Shown here: positions 11,702 through 42,989 of the stretch, piece after piece | How positions within the stretch are numbered: the stretch's first letter is position 1 | Layout of the letters: the number at the start of each line of letters is the position of its first letter | Source: Amoebophrya sp. A120 | Lineage: Eukaryota; Protista; Dinoflagellata | Direction: 5' to 3' | Assembly (NCBI GenBank): GCA_905178155.1 | Contig: CAJINV010000002.1 | Coordinates: forward strand, 3,114,515-3,178,514 | Length of the DNA: 64,000 bases | Notes under the pieces: generated by a model | Databases searched by the model: none | Told to the model about the DNA's origin: nothing | The model's input: only the letters and a program-made list of their open reading frames with translations | Translations under genes and position numbers: made by a program

Positions 11702-14700
11702 ATGTACGGCGGCCACGCAAATGGCGGCGGTCACGGGCAGTACCCAAATTACGCTGCTGCAGCCGCCGCAGCACAGCAGCAGCAGCACCATTACGGGCAG
11801 ATTCCCGGGCAGCAGCAGCAGCCCGGTGGCGGACAACAGGCTCATTACCCACAGCAGTACGGGCAGGTCCCGCATCACCCGCCACCCTACGGGCCGCCAC
11901 CAAACATGATGACCGCTGCGCATCAGCAACAGGCACAGCAGCAGCAACAGCAAATGGCCATGGCGATGGCGGCGCAGCAGCAACAGGCACAAGCCATGGC
12001 AATGGCCCAGGCGCAGCAGCAAATGCACTATAACGCGCAGCAACAGGCTTTTGCGGCAGGATACAATGCGCAACTGCAGCAACAAATGTACACAGCACAA
12101 CAACAAATGCAGGCAGCGGCAGCGCAGAAAGGTTCGTTTGGAATGTTTTTCTTTGATAGTAGAGCTCCTGCCGTGTGACAACATCAATTTCTGTATTTGT
12201 TTTGCAAGCAGCACAGAGCATATTGAGTGGGTTATCGTATATGATTTATTTCGCATGACAAGTTTTTGTTCATCGTACCTACACTACTAGGCACCACTCC
12301 CGGGACCGCGAACGGCGCGAACACAACGCCACCCAACGGTACCACCAGTGGCCCAAACGCGCAGACACCGTCTACCACTTCCGGCACAAAAATGTACGGC
12401 ACCGCACAGCCCTTCGTCCCGATGAGCCAACAGAAAGGCGGAAATAACGCGTCTTCCCCCATGGCAATTTCCAATCCTGCGGACCAAACCCCAACGGCGA
12501 CACCCCAGAAATTATTCCAACAGCAGCAATTTCCTTTGAAACTCGACTCCGAGGAGGCAAAAATCGACCAAATTGCCAAGGCGATGTCGCAGAAAACTAG
12601 CAGTTCCGCGGATTCGGTTTTAAAACCCCACCCGGGTCCTGCGCCGCACAACAACGGGAGCGGCACGGAGTCGACCATTCCGTCAGCGAATGGTACTAAG
12701 GGGCAGGCGTTACCGAAGACGGTCTCGAAGGAAGGCCAGCCGGGGATTGCGGTCTCACTGGAAGAAATTGCGTTTTTCATGGAAGACATGGAACGAACGG
12801 TCTGGTGGCTCATTAAGGCGGGGAAGGTATAGGATTTTTTGCTTGATTTGTGTTGCAGTTCGTTGCAGCATCCGGCGCACGACGACGAAGACGTCGGATG
12901 AAGCAGCACGACTTGCACAACTTCTTGTCATTATGCCATGCAAGGTACAAACTTCAATTTGCTAAAGATTTATACGAACAAAATCCTTATAAATCAGGTG
13001 AAGCAGCAAGAGTTAAAAAACCTGGAGGAATCGAAGAAGAAAGCCACCACCCCCTCCGACCTCAGTTCCCTCGCGGCGCAGCTCCAAGCCAAAACCTTCT
13101 CCACCCAGGCGGATTCGCCGGATAGCATTTTGCTCAAGGGGTCGGAGGAATTGCCGAAGGATGAAGAGTTGGCGAAAACCTGTGACTGGTGGTCAGTGAT
13201 GGAATCGATTGAAAAGAACGTTCTCACCCACATCGATATCCACAGTAAATTTCCCGTACACGTACAAATGCGGTCTCTGCATGAGAAAACCTGGCCCCGA
13301 TCTTAGCTTAGCATGACAAGTATTTTTACTGGTGAAGTCTGTGATGCATTTTGTACATGTACGGGAAATTTGTATTGCATAATCGAAACCCATGAACACC
13401 AGTTACGGTCGAAGATGTTCATCGTGGTGCAGCCGACAAGGGAGCAGAAGGAATTATTAGATATCCTGTGCAAAAGTATCGTACTCGTAGTAATCGCAGT
13501 TATGCATTACAAATCTCCATCTCAAGGCAAAACAGCATCACAAATTCGATTTGTCATGCTGAGCTAATTTGTATTGCAATTACTACTAGTACGATACTTT
13601 TGCAGTTCATACTAGACGTCTTGACACTACTCCGGTTTAACTGCGGGGGGAGAATTATCATCTTCGACATTCCGAACCACGAGATGAACCACAAAGCTTT
13701 GTGGCATTGCCTCCACGAGAACTTGATCAACCAAGTCCCGTTATCCTGTGTAAAAACGTCCCCACCCCAGAGTTGTCATGCAAATCTGCATGAGCTGGAA
13801 TTGGAAATGTTTTTCATGCGGAGCCCCATGAGAAGCATTATCCAGTCGCGTTTTGGAATTTGTAATGCTCCAAGTCCAACCAGCATCATATACTAGATCT
13901 GTGATGCTGCTCAGCTAGCTCAAACAGCCCTAGTACACTACGAATCCAAATTTGTCATGCAAAACAGCCAAAACTTGTGGATTTGTCTAGCCGAGTCCCC
14001 ATCTTGACTATGGGGTGCTGGGGACGTTTTTACATAGGATACCCGTGCTTCGGCGTGCAGGCGGATTTGGTGGAAGGCGGGTTGACGCAGGAGAAATACT
14101 TCATGCAGTGCCTCTCTATCGTCCCCTACATCAAAATATCCAATGCAAAAATGTCTGGATCTGGAAAAGTGTAGACTTGTCATGCAGATTTTCCATGACC
14201 CATGAGGTCTGGAATGCGGGACTTAGCATGACAGACTCTGGGAGGTCTCTGCCATGCCTATCCTGCATGAGAAACTCCCTTCTAACTTGGTCAAAAGTGT
14301 ACAGCTTTTGGCACTCACGCAACACAGATTTTTGCATGCTTCAGATTTACCATGACAAGTTGCAATCTTCCAGACCCAGACACTTTTGCAATTCATACAA
14401 AATCCCGGCGGGCCAGCAGGGAAACTCGCACGACAAAATCAAGTTGTATAGCGTCTTATGAATTGCAAAGATGTCTGGGTCTGGAAGATTGCAACTTGTG
14501 ATGCTATCTTTAGATTCCAAAAAAGTCTGTATTGCATGACCAGCAAGAGGATTCCAGTTTGTGCTACACGGAGAGGGCATTTCTCATGCGGTAGAGGTAA
14601 CACAAAGCGCTCTAAAGATCTGTGATGCTACAGTATGCATCACAGACATCATGGGTCATGGAAAATATGCATGACAAAGCTAAAGATCTCTCAGACCCGG

Positions 14701-39156: not shown

Positions 39157-41031
39157 ATAAGATTCATCGTTGAGAACTTTTCAAGTCCTCTGATCATTTT
39201 TCTCTACTTCGAGCGAAAACGTACATAGAAGCATGGTGTTGTATCTAGTGTATGATTTGCTTTAAAAAATCAGTGTTGTTTCGATCGTCCTGAAGAAGAT
39301 GAAGATGAACACAAGATGAACCTCCATGTGGTCGTGCTAAGATTCCTATCCAGGTGGTGGCTCTTTTAGCACGGTGGGTCGTTTCTAACTTCACTCGTTT
39401 CTTGTCTTAGTCTAATATTACATTTTTTCACTCATTGTTCTCTATCAAGTCTTCTAAATCAACTTCGTACTACACCAATTTTTAATCCTATTTTTCATGT
39501 TGACTTTTTTGCTGAGGTAACCGTATGAATCTGATTTTACCCGCCGAGACAAAAATCTTCATATCTCTGTTATGCTTACTTGGTAGTTGAAGGAGCAAGT
39601 GTCTGCTTGTAAACCACGATCTATTTTGAAAGGAAAAGAAAAAAATGGTGTTGACCCTTCGATTCGTATGAAGAACAACTCGAAGATCACCAGGTCAAGA
39701 AAAGGTCACTTCTTCCGCCTTCACTAGTTTAAAAACCGTATAAAGCTCGTTCTTCTACTTTGGGTAGCTGCTGGTGCGACTACAACACGACGTGAGTATT
39801 ACCACCAGCAGTAGAATGAGCAACTAGAAAACCAGAACCTCCGATAGGCGACAGGACCACGAGGAGCGGAAAGCGTTTCATTTATTTTCCAGAGACTTCG
39901 ACGCAAGAAGTCAAAGTCTCAATCTATTCTGTACAAAAAAATACAACGTCGCCCAATGAAAAATAAGGAAATGAAACCCCGTTATAAACTAGAATTTTGA
40001 AGAGCAGTATTAGGAGAGAGGAAATTGTCAAGGAAAACGAATAAAAAATCCAAAACAGTAAAAGGCGAAAAAACACGAATATTTCACGGTATGCAGCCGT
40101 CGATAGAAGATCCGTACTCGAATTTTATGAATAATTTTGTCAATCTTCAAGACGAGTCAGCTAAGCCACACAAAAACCAAATCACCAACTTCCGAAAAGA
40201 ACGCGAGTTGCCCACTGCAACAGCGGAGCGAGAACTAGACTGCATCACTTTACCATGCACGTTGAGGATGTTCTTTGCGACCACTCGTTGCAACTGCAAA
40301 AAGATCCAATAGAAGATCCCCGCCAAGAAGAGCAGCAAGTGTAGATGTTCATGTTGTGCCTGGTGCAGCTCCTTGAGCTTGTCTCACTCGTGTCATTGTA
40401 GCTGACCGACAAGATCCTAAGCTCCTTGTTGTAGCGGCTCTGGTCGTGATTTGAGCCTGCAACAAACGATCCATCTCGCCGCGCAGTCGTGACCATGGAT
40501 CGTTGCAAGAACAAACGATCCATCTCGCGCATAATTCGCCATCGTACAACCTCGTGAGTCATTCATGGGGTCGCAACATCTCATCGTCAACTCTGAGGTC
40601 GAGATACATTGACTTTTTTTTTTCAACTTCTCAACGACAAATTTTGATTTTCCATGTATTTCACATCAGGTTGCTTGCTTCTCTGTTATGCTGCATTCTT
40701 GAGGATAAACCATTTTTACACCTATTGCATCCAACTTTTACGCATCTCTCTCGCTGCTTCAGCGGCTGCCCAGAGCCTGGGTTAGTCTAGAAGTTTGATT
40801 TAGAAGTGCGATACAACTACGAAGAACTTTTAATACCATTCTACTAGCGACGAGAAATTGCAATCTATTTCAATTGCGATTGTTGTTTCACCCCGCAAAT
40901 AGAAATACTACACCTCGTAAACTAACTACCTGACATACATTTTATTGACCTGACTCGCTTCCACATCCACCCTCCTTCCTTTAGTCCTCTCAACCTGTAT
41001 TGATAAATCCCGAAACGAAAACACAAAAAAA

Positions 41032-42989
41032 ATGCCGAAGCCAGCTGGAGCTCATGACTTGCTCAAGGCCAAGAAGGCCGCGAAGGAACACAAGATTTCT
41101 GTTAAAATTGTCAAGAAAAAGGACGAGAAGGGAAGCAAGAATTTGAAATCGAAGTTGAAAGACGTGAAGAAATTGAAGTCGAAAATGGTGTTCAAGGACA
41201 CGAAAGAGAAGGGAAAAGATCCGAAATTTTCCAAGAAGGACAAAGACAAGGCGAAATTTGACAAGTTGAAATACGACAAGTTGAAGTACGACAAGAACAA
41301 GAAAATGAAGTACGATAAGGGCATGAAGGAGCTGAAGGACAAGGGCGCGAAGTTTGACAAGCTGTTCATGCAGCACTCGATGGCGTCGATTAAAAAGAAG
41401 AAAGGCGTGAAGACCGCAATGAAGAAAAAAGCCTCCACCTCCGGTGTAATTCAAAAGATCAAATCTTCCACGAAACTGTTCCGTCCGAACAAAAAGAAAA
41501 ACCGCGCGAAGCCGGGGGAGCGGGTGAAAGAAGCGATCAAGTTTTACCAAGAACAGGTGTGCCCGACGGAAAATCTGGTCCGCTTTTGTCACGCGAAAAA
41601 GTTCACTGCGCTGTGCTTGCAGAATTTCCGACAGGCGGCAGCTTCGGTGGGGAAAAGTGGTAAGAAGAAGGATGGCGCGGGTCATCTTTCGATGAAGAAA
41701 CACGATGGCCAGCAGGAAGAAGAAGAAGAACCCAGCAAGATCCGCGTTAAGGAGCTAGCTGTCGAGCATCTTCTAACCGTCACCGAGGAGCACATCCAGA
41801 AGCTGATCCAGAATTCCCAATCCTTCAGCTACTGCCGGGGCAACCAAACTTTACAGTCGAAGGATTTGCAGTTTGGGAAGATGAATTTAGAGAACAAATC
41901 CTCGAAAGTCACTATTCAAAATACCGCGCCGTTTCTAGATCCTATGCACTGCAAAAGCATCGCACTCGTATTGCAATCATGCATTACAGATTTCTTTCTT
42001 CAGCTCAATCAGCATTACAAATTTTATTTCTCATGCTGAGGAAATTTGTAATGCATTTATACGAGTGCGATACTTTTGCACTGGATAGACCCGAAAACGG
42101 AGCAAATCAACACGAAAACGCGGAACAAGCTGCAAGTCCTGTATTCCCCACAAAACAAGTGTCGTACTCGTATAAATGCATTACAAATTTTCTCAGCATG
42201 AGAACTTGACTTTGTCATGCTGTTTTACCTTAAGGACAAGAATTGTCGTGCATAGTTGGAAGTAGTAAGTACGAGTGCGATACTTGTTTTGCAATGCATA
42301 TCCTGCACGACGGCTCGATTGACGCCAGCCAGTGGTGGGATCCGGAATTGGATGAGAATTTCCAGCATTTGTGTGGTGGGAAGAAGGACAAAGACAAAGA
42401 TGTTGGGAAGAAGTGCGTGATCGCCTTTGACGACGGGACGGATTTTTTCGGAGGAGAAGCTTACCATGCAGATAAGGATCATTTCAAAGCCGGTACCGCT
42501 TCTTTTGATAAGAATTTCAAAGACGACAAAGACAACAAGCAGCTCCTGTTCAAAGACGTCAAAGACTTGAAATTTGCGAAGAAAGGAATGAAGACCCCAG
42601 CACTTTTGAACTCCTCGGAAAACCACTACACTTCCTCGAGCAGCAAGACAAGCACTATCAAGACCCACTTCCACCCGCCGGGGCAAACGAATCTCCAGAT
42701 CCCCTACGAGCTGAAGGAACTCCGTTTTCCGAATGACGCCGATATCCGAAAGTTATGCCATCGTGCCGGGGTCTTGCGCCTCGGCGGACAAATGAGCGTG
42801 ACGAGGTTACGGGCGGAATTCAAAGATTACTTCTTCAAGGTCTTGCAGAAGGCCAACATCTTGCGGGATTTCTGCGGCGAAAAGAAGACTCTGATGAAGA
42901 AGCACGTCACGGAGGCGTTGGGAGTGCTGGCGCGGAATAACTCCGGAGTGGGATCAGCCGCGAAGAGCAGCAGCAGTAAAAATGGCTGA
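41032..42989 (+). CDS. Lys-rich protein with an H3-like followed by an H4-like histone fold (~547 aa); two introner introns
   Basis: Exons 41032-41942, 42093-42141, 42306-42989 are in frame. KKNRAKPGERVKEAIKFYQ...IRVKELAVEHLLTVTEEHIQKLIQNSQSFSYCRGNQTLQSKDLQ aligns by eye with H3; DADIRKLCHRAGVLRLGG...LRAEFKDYFFKVLQKANILRDFCGEKKTLMKKHVTEAL aligns with H4. Confidence 0.78.
41943..42087. mobile_element. Introner family B
   Basis: TSD GATCC/GACCC. Confidence 0.9.
42142..42300. mobile_element. Introner family B variant
   Basis: TSD TCCTG; IR aaaacaagtgtcgtactcgta/tacgagtgcgatacttgtttt. Confidence 0.88.

Follow-up and report, generated by a model that had tools for sequence, protein, structure and literature searches.

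A gene that seems to encode two histone-type folds in one polypeptide, H3-like on the N-terminal side and H4-like on the C-terminal side, lies on the forward strand at positions 41032-42989 of a stretch of the genome of Amoebophrya sp. A120, a marine parasite (GCA_905178155.1, CAJINV010000002.1:3,114,515-3,178,514, forward strand). The whole stretch, 64 kb long, is referred to here as the window, and coordinates are those of the window. Two long forward frames occupy the locus (41032-42039 and 42243-42989), and two stretches with strong inverted repeats stand in between. When public data were placed on the region, a single transcript-type contig of 3359 nt and depth 37.5 from run X1, a run presumed, as a guess, to be RNA, covered 40668-41940, 42091-42136 and 42301 to beyond 43800, omitting exactly 41941-42090 (150 nt) and 42137-42300 (164 nt) and joining three exons. 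The spliced total of 1644 nt corresponds to 547 amino acids plus the stop codon, in frame, with exon 3 restoring the frame at 42303. The spliced product is identical to P0001, a 547-residue 'unnamed protein product [Amoebophrya sp. A120]' of the protein databases, which has no name and no precomputed Pfam domain there. Owing to the non-canonical introns of this organism, transcriptomes served to build the gene models of A120 (Farhat et al. 2021, PMC7789003) and, thus, the annotation of P0001 also reflects RNA evidence and need not be independent of X1. The original prediction, made by reading the letters alone, of one spliced gene for a single chain of about 547 residues is therefore confirmed by the contig and by the identical database entry; moreover, one contig spans both folds, as expected for a single gene and not for two, provided that X1 is RNA as presumed.

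Exon 1 (41032-41940, 303 codons from the ATG at 41032, equal to P0001 residues 1-303 and read from the X1 contig) comprises a Lys-rich, Arg-free basic N-terminal tail (residues 1-150, 41032-41481), recognized by its composition and its DK(x)K(F/Y) repeats, and the H3-like domain (residues ~155-290, 41494-41901), delimited by Pfam, orthologues, hhalign and ESM Atlas. Exon 2 (42091-42136) is a micro-exon of 46 nt in the inter-domain linker, which encodes PKTEQINTKTRNKLQ plus 1 nt, is present as a piece of the X1 contig and matches P0001. Exon 3 (42301-42989) carries a D/K-rich linker, the H4-like histone-fold domain (residues 456-530, 42711-42935), delimited by profiles, hhalign and ESM Atlas, and a Ser-rich C-terminal tail, with the stop codon at 42987-42989. 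All of these features are on the forward strand, and the histone motifs that had been pointed out in the sequence are found at the positions given for them.

The protein belongs to a small family. An exhaustive HMMER pass over 1.84 billion representative proteins returned four relatives only at E up to 0.001: P0002 (335 aa, E 7.6e-34) from Amoebophrya AT5.2, P0003 (260 aa, E 2.9e-20) from Amoebophrya A25, P0004 (2206 aa, E 1e-9; N-terminal domain only), also from AT5.2, and P0005 (367 aa, E 1.4e-6), encoded on a 1393-bp JGI marine-metagenome contig. Both domains are present in three of the four (P0002, P0003 and P0005), which share with P0001 the order of H3-like block, variable linker and H4-like block. 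The linker ranges from about 50 to 165 aa across the family and contains a small patch, D-x-S-x-W-W/N-x-K-T-G, conserved in these four proteins; N310, within exon 2, is invariant in the family. All members are strongly basic, with a net charge of +31 to +47. P0004 opens with a near copy of the H3-like half and linker, followed by approximately 2000 unrelated residues and no H4-like half; it is probably a fused or mis-spliced gene model, and could also be a real paralogue with a new C-terminus. The A120 genome has no second copy, since the matches of the family profile there are limited to the present locus and a single ordinary H4 gene, and neither IMG/VR nor two metagenome-contig scans yielded relatives. 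Word-based homologue searches, with P0001 or with the family alignment, returned P0001 alone, probably because Lys-rich words dominate them, and the locus was not picked up by a six-frame Pfam Histone search of the whole A120 genome.

On sequence grounds, the C-terminal domain is established as a histone fold with H4 identity. It is laid out as alpha1-L1 (IRKLCHRAGVLRLGG), a long alpha2, L2 (EKKT) and alpha3. Taken alone and compared with the PDB, the domain reaches H4 at E 0.047 only, beside a chance match to prolyl oligopeptidase; the four-member family profile matches 160 PDB sequences at E up to 1, and the best 60 of these 160 (E 1.2e-6 to 2e-4) are without exception histone H4, the alignment staying in register over alpha1 to alpha3 (H4 residues ~28-96). 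When a sub-profile of the C-terminal domain was compared with the histone genes of A120, it found H4 loci only, with 33 bits for L021, 19 for L015 and 12 for L017. Profile-profile comparison was carried out with hhalign, using class alignments cut from the histone loci of A120 itself and 60 column shuffles as controls; the C-terminal domain scored 44.5 against H4 (E 4.6e-8, 95%), 25.2 against H3, 16.4 against H2A and 15.4 against H2B, with a shuffle maximum of 16.2. For residues 455-533, the model given by the ESM Atlas overlays histone clusters with a template-modelling score (TM) of 0.55-0.61. Both H4 motifs, R-x-G-V-x-R in L1 and K-(K/R)-T in L2, are present: four residues that do not vary in the family, R473, G475, V476 and R478, correspond to H4 R40, G42, V43 and R45, and the KKT of loop 2 is the equivalent of H4 R78-K79-T80. 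The linker precedes this domain, and the family members end 2-20 residues past alpha3. The H4-like fold proposed for the C-terminal half is thus supported by family profile, hhalign and ESM Atlas alike.

The N-terminal domain is well supported as a histone fold by sequence and profile comparison, and its H3-like character is moderately supported. It consists of alpha1, alpha2 and alpha3 (TLQSKDLQ), preceded by an alpha-N motif (AKPGERVKEAIKFYQ) and with a long insertion of acidic and basic residues in loop 1. PF00125 scores 29.2 bits on P0003, in two stretches, with a cut-off of 26.4, and PF00808 exceeds its cut-off of 21.4 on both P0003 (22.1) and P0005 (24.6), the best stretches lying in the N-terminal domain. 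In hhalign, the domain scored 32.2 against H3 (E 6.3e-5, 64%, 98 columns from alpha-N to alpha3), 20.0 against H2B, 11.9 against H4 and 8.7 against H2A, with a shuffle maximum of 16.4, and the alpha-N segment AKPGERVKEAIKFYQ, which is to be compared with RYRPGTVALREIRRYQ in H3, matches H3 only (20.6 versus a shuffle maximum of 11.6). A HMMER profile of the domain gave less than 8 bits with each of A120's own histones, H3 being detected by profile-profile comparison only. K160, F171, Y172 and Q173 of the alpha-N motif are invariant in the family, as are the equivalents of H3 T118 and D123 (D278 = Asp123), both within the alpha3 motif T-L-x-x-K-D-L. Moreover, the nearest feature and structure neighbours of both halves in the ESM Atlas are histone-fold clusters. 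An H3-like fold ahead of the H4-like one, as anticipated, is supported, the histone fold by the Pfam matches of the orthologues and the likeness to H3, moderately, by hhalign; the assignment to H3 rests mainly on the H3-specific alpha-N motif and on the T-L-x-x-K-D-L of alpha3.

In the tail, residues 1-150 of P0001 contain 36% Lys and no Arg; Ala and Pro are scarce, 17 residues are acidic, and the net charge is +37; the repeats DKAKF/DKLKY/DKLKY occupy residues 72-86. This composition agrees with the basic, Lys-rich N-terminus with DK(x)K(F/Y) repeats that had been described. Its likeness to linker histones, which had also been claimed, is compositional only: a Pfam search found no match to PF00538, the winged-helix globular domain of linker histone H1, at E up to 10, and the tail is carried by P0001 and P0005 only, being absent from the gene models of P0002 and P0003. 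K/D-rich tails seem, from the sequences compared, to be a recurrent trait of Amoebophrya histone variants, since the H2B gene L003 (G000:C2:11534434-11537781, minus frame 2175-1270) has a long N-terminal DKDKMK-repeat tail whose composition resembles that of the P0001 tail and linker. Since other histone variants here carry such tails, that of P0001 fits a local habit and is not a pointer to a linker histone.

The two interruptions of the gene are introner-type introns, as had been proposed, judging by their ends, their inverted and direct repeats and their skipping in X1. Introner 1 (41941-42090, 150 nt) ends in CC..AC, with the cut ambiguous by 2 nt and a 2-nt boundary repeat, and has inverted repeats at 41942-41971/42059-42088 (30 nt, 90%); introner 2 (42137-42300, 164 nt) ends in TC..TA, with the cut ambiguous by 5 nt owing to the direct repeat TCCTG at both borders, and has inverted repeats at 42151-42172/42270-42291 (22 nt, 91%). 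Sharing direct and inverted repeats, both belong to one repeat family, whose terminal word, TACGAGTGCGATACTT, is found at 11 sites of the window where 0.01 would be expected; these sites lie between 5411 and 63451 on both strands, for example at 13474, 22427, 25298 and 63436. Published Amoebophrya introners have non-canonical ends, inverted repeats that pair the intron ends and direct repeats of 3-5 nt at the borders (PMC7789003). The present introners share with them the non-canonical ends, the inverted repeats, the border direct repeats and the membership of a repeated family; however, their inverted repeats, of 30 and 22 nt, somewhat exceed the 8-20 nt that were published. Introner 1 contains the in-frame stop at 42037-42039 that closes the unspliced frame, as the listing of open reading frames confirms, and its retention could, on paper, give an H3-only product. 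Both introners are located within the inter-domain linker and interrupt neither fold, so that the locus illustrates how introners can insert into a flexible linker and leave the folds on its two sides intact. Numerous short X1 contigs that come from elsewhere also map to 42007-42078, the inner part of introner 1, with a summed depth of up to 170 versus 37.5 for the gene, and copies of this introner family are thus abundant in the X1 data set.

Genome profile searches show that the A120 assembly has separate genes for all four core histones: H2A at L006, L010 and L018; H2B at L003, L005 and L012; H3 at L001/L014, L007/L008/L016 and L009/L011/L013, together with the divergent long-tailed variants L002 and L004; and H4 at L015, L017 and L021. 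With this full set of separate histones, the fused gene supplements the ordinary ones and does not stand in for them. The H3 variant L016/L007/L008 (G000:C4:5218938-5219771) has ~400 Gln/Ser/Gly-rich residues ahead of the alpha-N motif in its open frame, and the H4 variant L015 (G000:C3:2183010-2183195) has an N-terminal extension of 250 residues. L002 (G000:C2:10157154-10157423) and L004 (G000:C2:12429042-12429293) are divergent H3-type genes in which the N-terminal region is long and loop 1 is extended; they carry RRDP(W/F)..KRF where the usual alpha-N motif stands, and are possible centromeric H3 candidates. In a transcriptome survey of Amoebophrya (Ameob2), four strongly diverged variants of H4 were noted, of which many are elongated and lack H4K20 (Marinov and Lynch 2015, PMC4751559). 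L016/L007/L008 and L015 may be such elongated variants, and P0002, too, may be among the H4 variants of that survey. The text of that survey (PMC4751559) mentions neither a fusion nor an H3-like half, the words 'fusion', 'fused' and 'doublet' being absent from it, and a literature search found no paper on a fused histone in dinoflagellates or Syndiniales. The gene model is public but unnamed, and the fold assignments are solid for the family.

Taken together, the protein is probably a lineage-specific single-chain pair of H3/H4-type folds, with a variable linker, that serves as a chromatin protein in Amoebophrya (Syndiniales, MALV-II). The family's invariant residues are the ones that form the nucleosomal H4-L1/H3-L2 DNA site, where the classical SIN mutations H4 V43, H4 R45 and H3 T118 fall, and an H3-type fold has to be paired with an H4-type fold for this site to exist. 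We infer that the two folds would pair head-to-tail like H3-H4, within one chain or between chains, and that the resulting pseudodimer or domain-swapped dimer would bind DNA via two loop1-loop2 sites, to which the Lys-rich tail (net +37) could add non-specific affinity. The protein would thereby form a tetrasome-like or stand-alone DNA-binding or compacting particle beside the ordinary histones of the parasite, which would be likelier than participation in a canonical octamer. In canonical histones, the H4 C-terminal strand RTLYGFGG docks H2A, and H3 His113 belongs to the H3-H3' bundle; a canonical octamer is unlikely because the family has neither this strand nor this residue, and a DNA-binding pseudodimer or domain-swapped dimer is the most likely form because the members are very basic and keep invariant the residues of a DNA site that requires pairing. 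Nuclear location and a role in chromatin are likewise putative, and intramolecular pairing of the two folds would be expected from histone-fold biology.

A number of observations weigh against this reading. In the family sequences, both the ARTK-type H3 tail and the GRGK-type H4 tail (K16/K20) are absent, as is the RTLYGFGG strand, while A120's own H4 genes keep (I/L)(Y/L)G(Y/F)G, and the equivalent of H3 His113 is C, A or S. PF00125 scores only 11.4-18.6 bits on P0001, under the cut-off of 26.4, the N-terminal domain alone giving E 0.0023 and 18.6 bits; thus, the expectation that a Pfam search would recognize the histone fold holds for the orthologues, which pass the cut-offs, but not for P0001 alone. 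The N-terminal domain of P0001 by itself has no PDB match at E up to 10, its two-row profile has no histone match there, and its fold without alpha-N scores 18.3 with H3 (55 columns, in register) versus 18.9 with H2B and does not discriminate between them. Three raw RNA-seq runs (2026) placed 0 reads on the stretch and provide no test of splicing. Structure prediction is of low confidence as well: AlphaFold reached a pLDDT (predicted local distance difference test) of 41.5 for P0001 as a single sequence, and of 51.1, with a predicted TM (pTM) of 0.30, for P0003 with a four-row alignment. Even so, and in favour of the reading, the latter low-confidence model has helices predicted at 32-46 (alpha-N), 57-69/88-123/131-145 and 195-204/212-239/247-259, a pattern of helix, long helix and helix that occurs twice and agrees with the profile alignments and the ESM Atlas neighbours. 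Against the PDB, the best Foldseek match of this model has a non-significant E of 0.2, yet its top rows, over ~114 columns, are nearly all H3 or CENP-A chains, which speaks for the reading, subject to the same low confidence of the model. VIA-align, run over 48,161 chains, places mostly histone-fold proteins on P0003 residues 47-147 with Z 5-6.8, values that, at 6.8 or less, are too low to rule out a common helical arrangement, and a BFVD fold search with the P0003 model gave nothing significant (best E 0.028). The handshake between the two halves is thus not demonstrated, since both AlphaFold models are of low confidence and the Foldseek and VIA results are weak.

The same pair of folds could instead scaffold, and not package, as a non-nucleosomal adaptor, either a fused, very divergent module of the H3/H4-like TAF9/TAF6 type (TFIID/SAGA) or a kinetochore module of the CENP-T/W or CENP-S/X type, a role that we regard as unlikely. 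In the six-frame search of A120, TAF6 PF02969 had no match and TAF9 PF02291 had one of only 18.3 bits, elsewhere in the genome (C37:103861-104055), which leaves the TAF6/TAF9 subunits unaccounted for; however, TAFs missed in a six-frame search are weak evidence of absence in such a fast-evolving, intron-rich genome. CENP-W, TAF9/TAF6 and CENP-S/X are among the top VIA rows (Z 5.8-6.8), CENP-S and TAF clusters are among the ESM feature neighbours, P0005 has a weak PF02291 match (E 0.045), and the absence of the histone tail motifs and of the H4 C-terminal strand would suit an adaptor. Nevertheless, none of the best 60 PDB sequence matches is TAF6 or CENP, all being H4, the alpha-N motif (KPG..R...AI+FYQ) is H3-specific and matches H3 only, matches above the Pfam cut-offs are to Histone and CBFD_NFYB_HMF and not to the TAF families, and the protein lacks the HEAT domain of TAF6.

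An origin by capture of a histone doublet from a giant virus (Nucleocytoviricota), with later domestication as is thought for the dinoflagellate DVNP, had been suggested for this gene and is improbable. Fused histones are typical of giant viruses, the taxonomic range of the family is narrow, and the top BFVD rows hold viral doublets and the Medusavirus stheno 'Fused protein of histone H3 and histone H4', but these viral rows are not significant (E 0.03-1.5, TM ~0.2, with a low-confidence model), no viral protein was found at E 0.001 among the 1.84 billion proteins and no relative in IMG/VR, and the best matches are cellular H4s and A120's own H4 and H3. In the Marseilleviridae, moreover, the doublets have the opposite order, H4-H3, according to Liu et al. 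(2021). The proposal of a secreted effector that enters the nucleus of the host dinoflagellate and remodels its chromatin does not find support either and is likewise improbable. Lineage-specific, fast-evolving genes are typical of effectors, and a very basic DNA-binding protein of an intracellular parasite could act on host DNA; however, the first 30 residues are charged and contain no hydrophobic signal segment, and the domains are conserved across three divergent strains. We know of no export motif for Amoebophrya. If the similarity had arisen by chance in a helical orphan protein that evolves fast and has no true histone folds, this would account for the sub-threshold matches of P0001 alone and for the poor structure predictions, but such a coincidence is strongly disfavoured and the least credible of these explanations, since the family-profile and profile-profile results are class-specific and far above the shuffled controls and one orthologue, P0003, passes the curated Pfam cut-off.

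If the protein is the chromatin-associated pair of H3/H4-type folds considered probable above, it could be, as a tentative and rather speculative extension, that Amoebophrya and its MALV-II kin package part of their genome, perhaps in the highly condensed dinospore, with a cellular single-chain H3-H4 particle that assembles without H2A-H2B. Such a packaging particle, if real, would mean that eukaryotes arrived anew, and independently, at the fused histones known from giant viruses and archaea; in a lineage where DVNP has largely taken over from histones, it would also be a natural experiment bearing on how the nucleosome evolved, as framed by the 'tethered intermediate' hypothesis. In cellular eukaryotes, each core histone is nearly always a protein of its own. 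As a conserved and expressed fusion of H3-like and H4-like folds, the protein would add a cellular eukaryotic example in a group whose chromatin is already exceptional, give the chromatin of Syndiniales, of which little is understood, a concrete candidate, and show that core chromatin folds may lie hidden in unannotated 'orphan' proteins of parasites that evolve fast. Fused pairs, known mainly from archaea, bacteria and giant viruses, feature in models of the origin of the nucleosome (PMC10919886, PMC11222145).

Among known systems, the giant-virus doublets are similar to the Amoebophrya protein in having two core-histone-type folds in one chain, which guarantees a 1:1 stoichiometry, and the fused H3-H4 of Medusavirus stheno (263 aa) also shares the order of H3 followed by H4 and a size near that of the A25 orthologue (260 aa). 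In contrast to the viral doublets, the Amoebophrya gene is cellular, with introner introns and a place on a eukaryotic chromosome, and its product has a Lys-rich tail and a long, variable linker (about 50 to 165 aa); neither the exhaustive search, IMG/VR nor BFVD gave a significant sequence or structure match to viral doublets. Marseilleviridae also have H2B-H2A doublets, and a partner H2B-H2A doublet was not found for the Amoebophrya protein. The doublets of Melbournevirus form nucleosome-like particles (PMC8357426). Compared with canonical H3 and H4, to which its identity is ~10-25%, as to histones in general, the fused protein keeps R-x-G-V-x-R and KKT in the C-terminal domain and alpha-N and T-L-x-x-K-D-L in the N-terminal domain, but it is a fused chain with a long loop-1 insertion and has no ARTK or GRGK tail, no RTLYGFGG strand and no His113. 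The animal 'H3-H4 doublets' are at least 88% identical to canonical histones (PMC13520046), unlike the Amoebophrya family, which is divergent yet conserved. Proteins with two histone folds also occur in archaea, bacteria, giant viruses and a few eukaryotic proteins, among them Sos1, ABTB2 and SPT3 (PMC13088155), and the Amoebophrya protein shares with archaeal HMk, the haloarchaeal doublets, bacterial DUF1931 and eukaryotic Sos1, ABTB2/Cca3 and SPT3 the presence of two folds per polypeptide and the expected pseudodimer (PMC13088155), DUF1931 and SPT3 clusters being among its ESM structure neighbours. However, Sos1, ABTB2/Cca3 and SPT3 resemble H2A/H2B or TAF pairs within signalling or transcription proteins, whereas the Amoebophrya protein is H3/H4-like, very basic and made up of no other domain.

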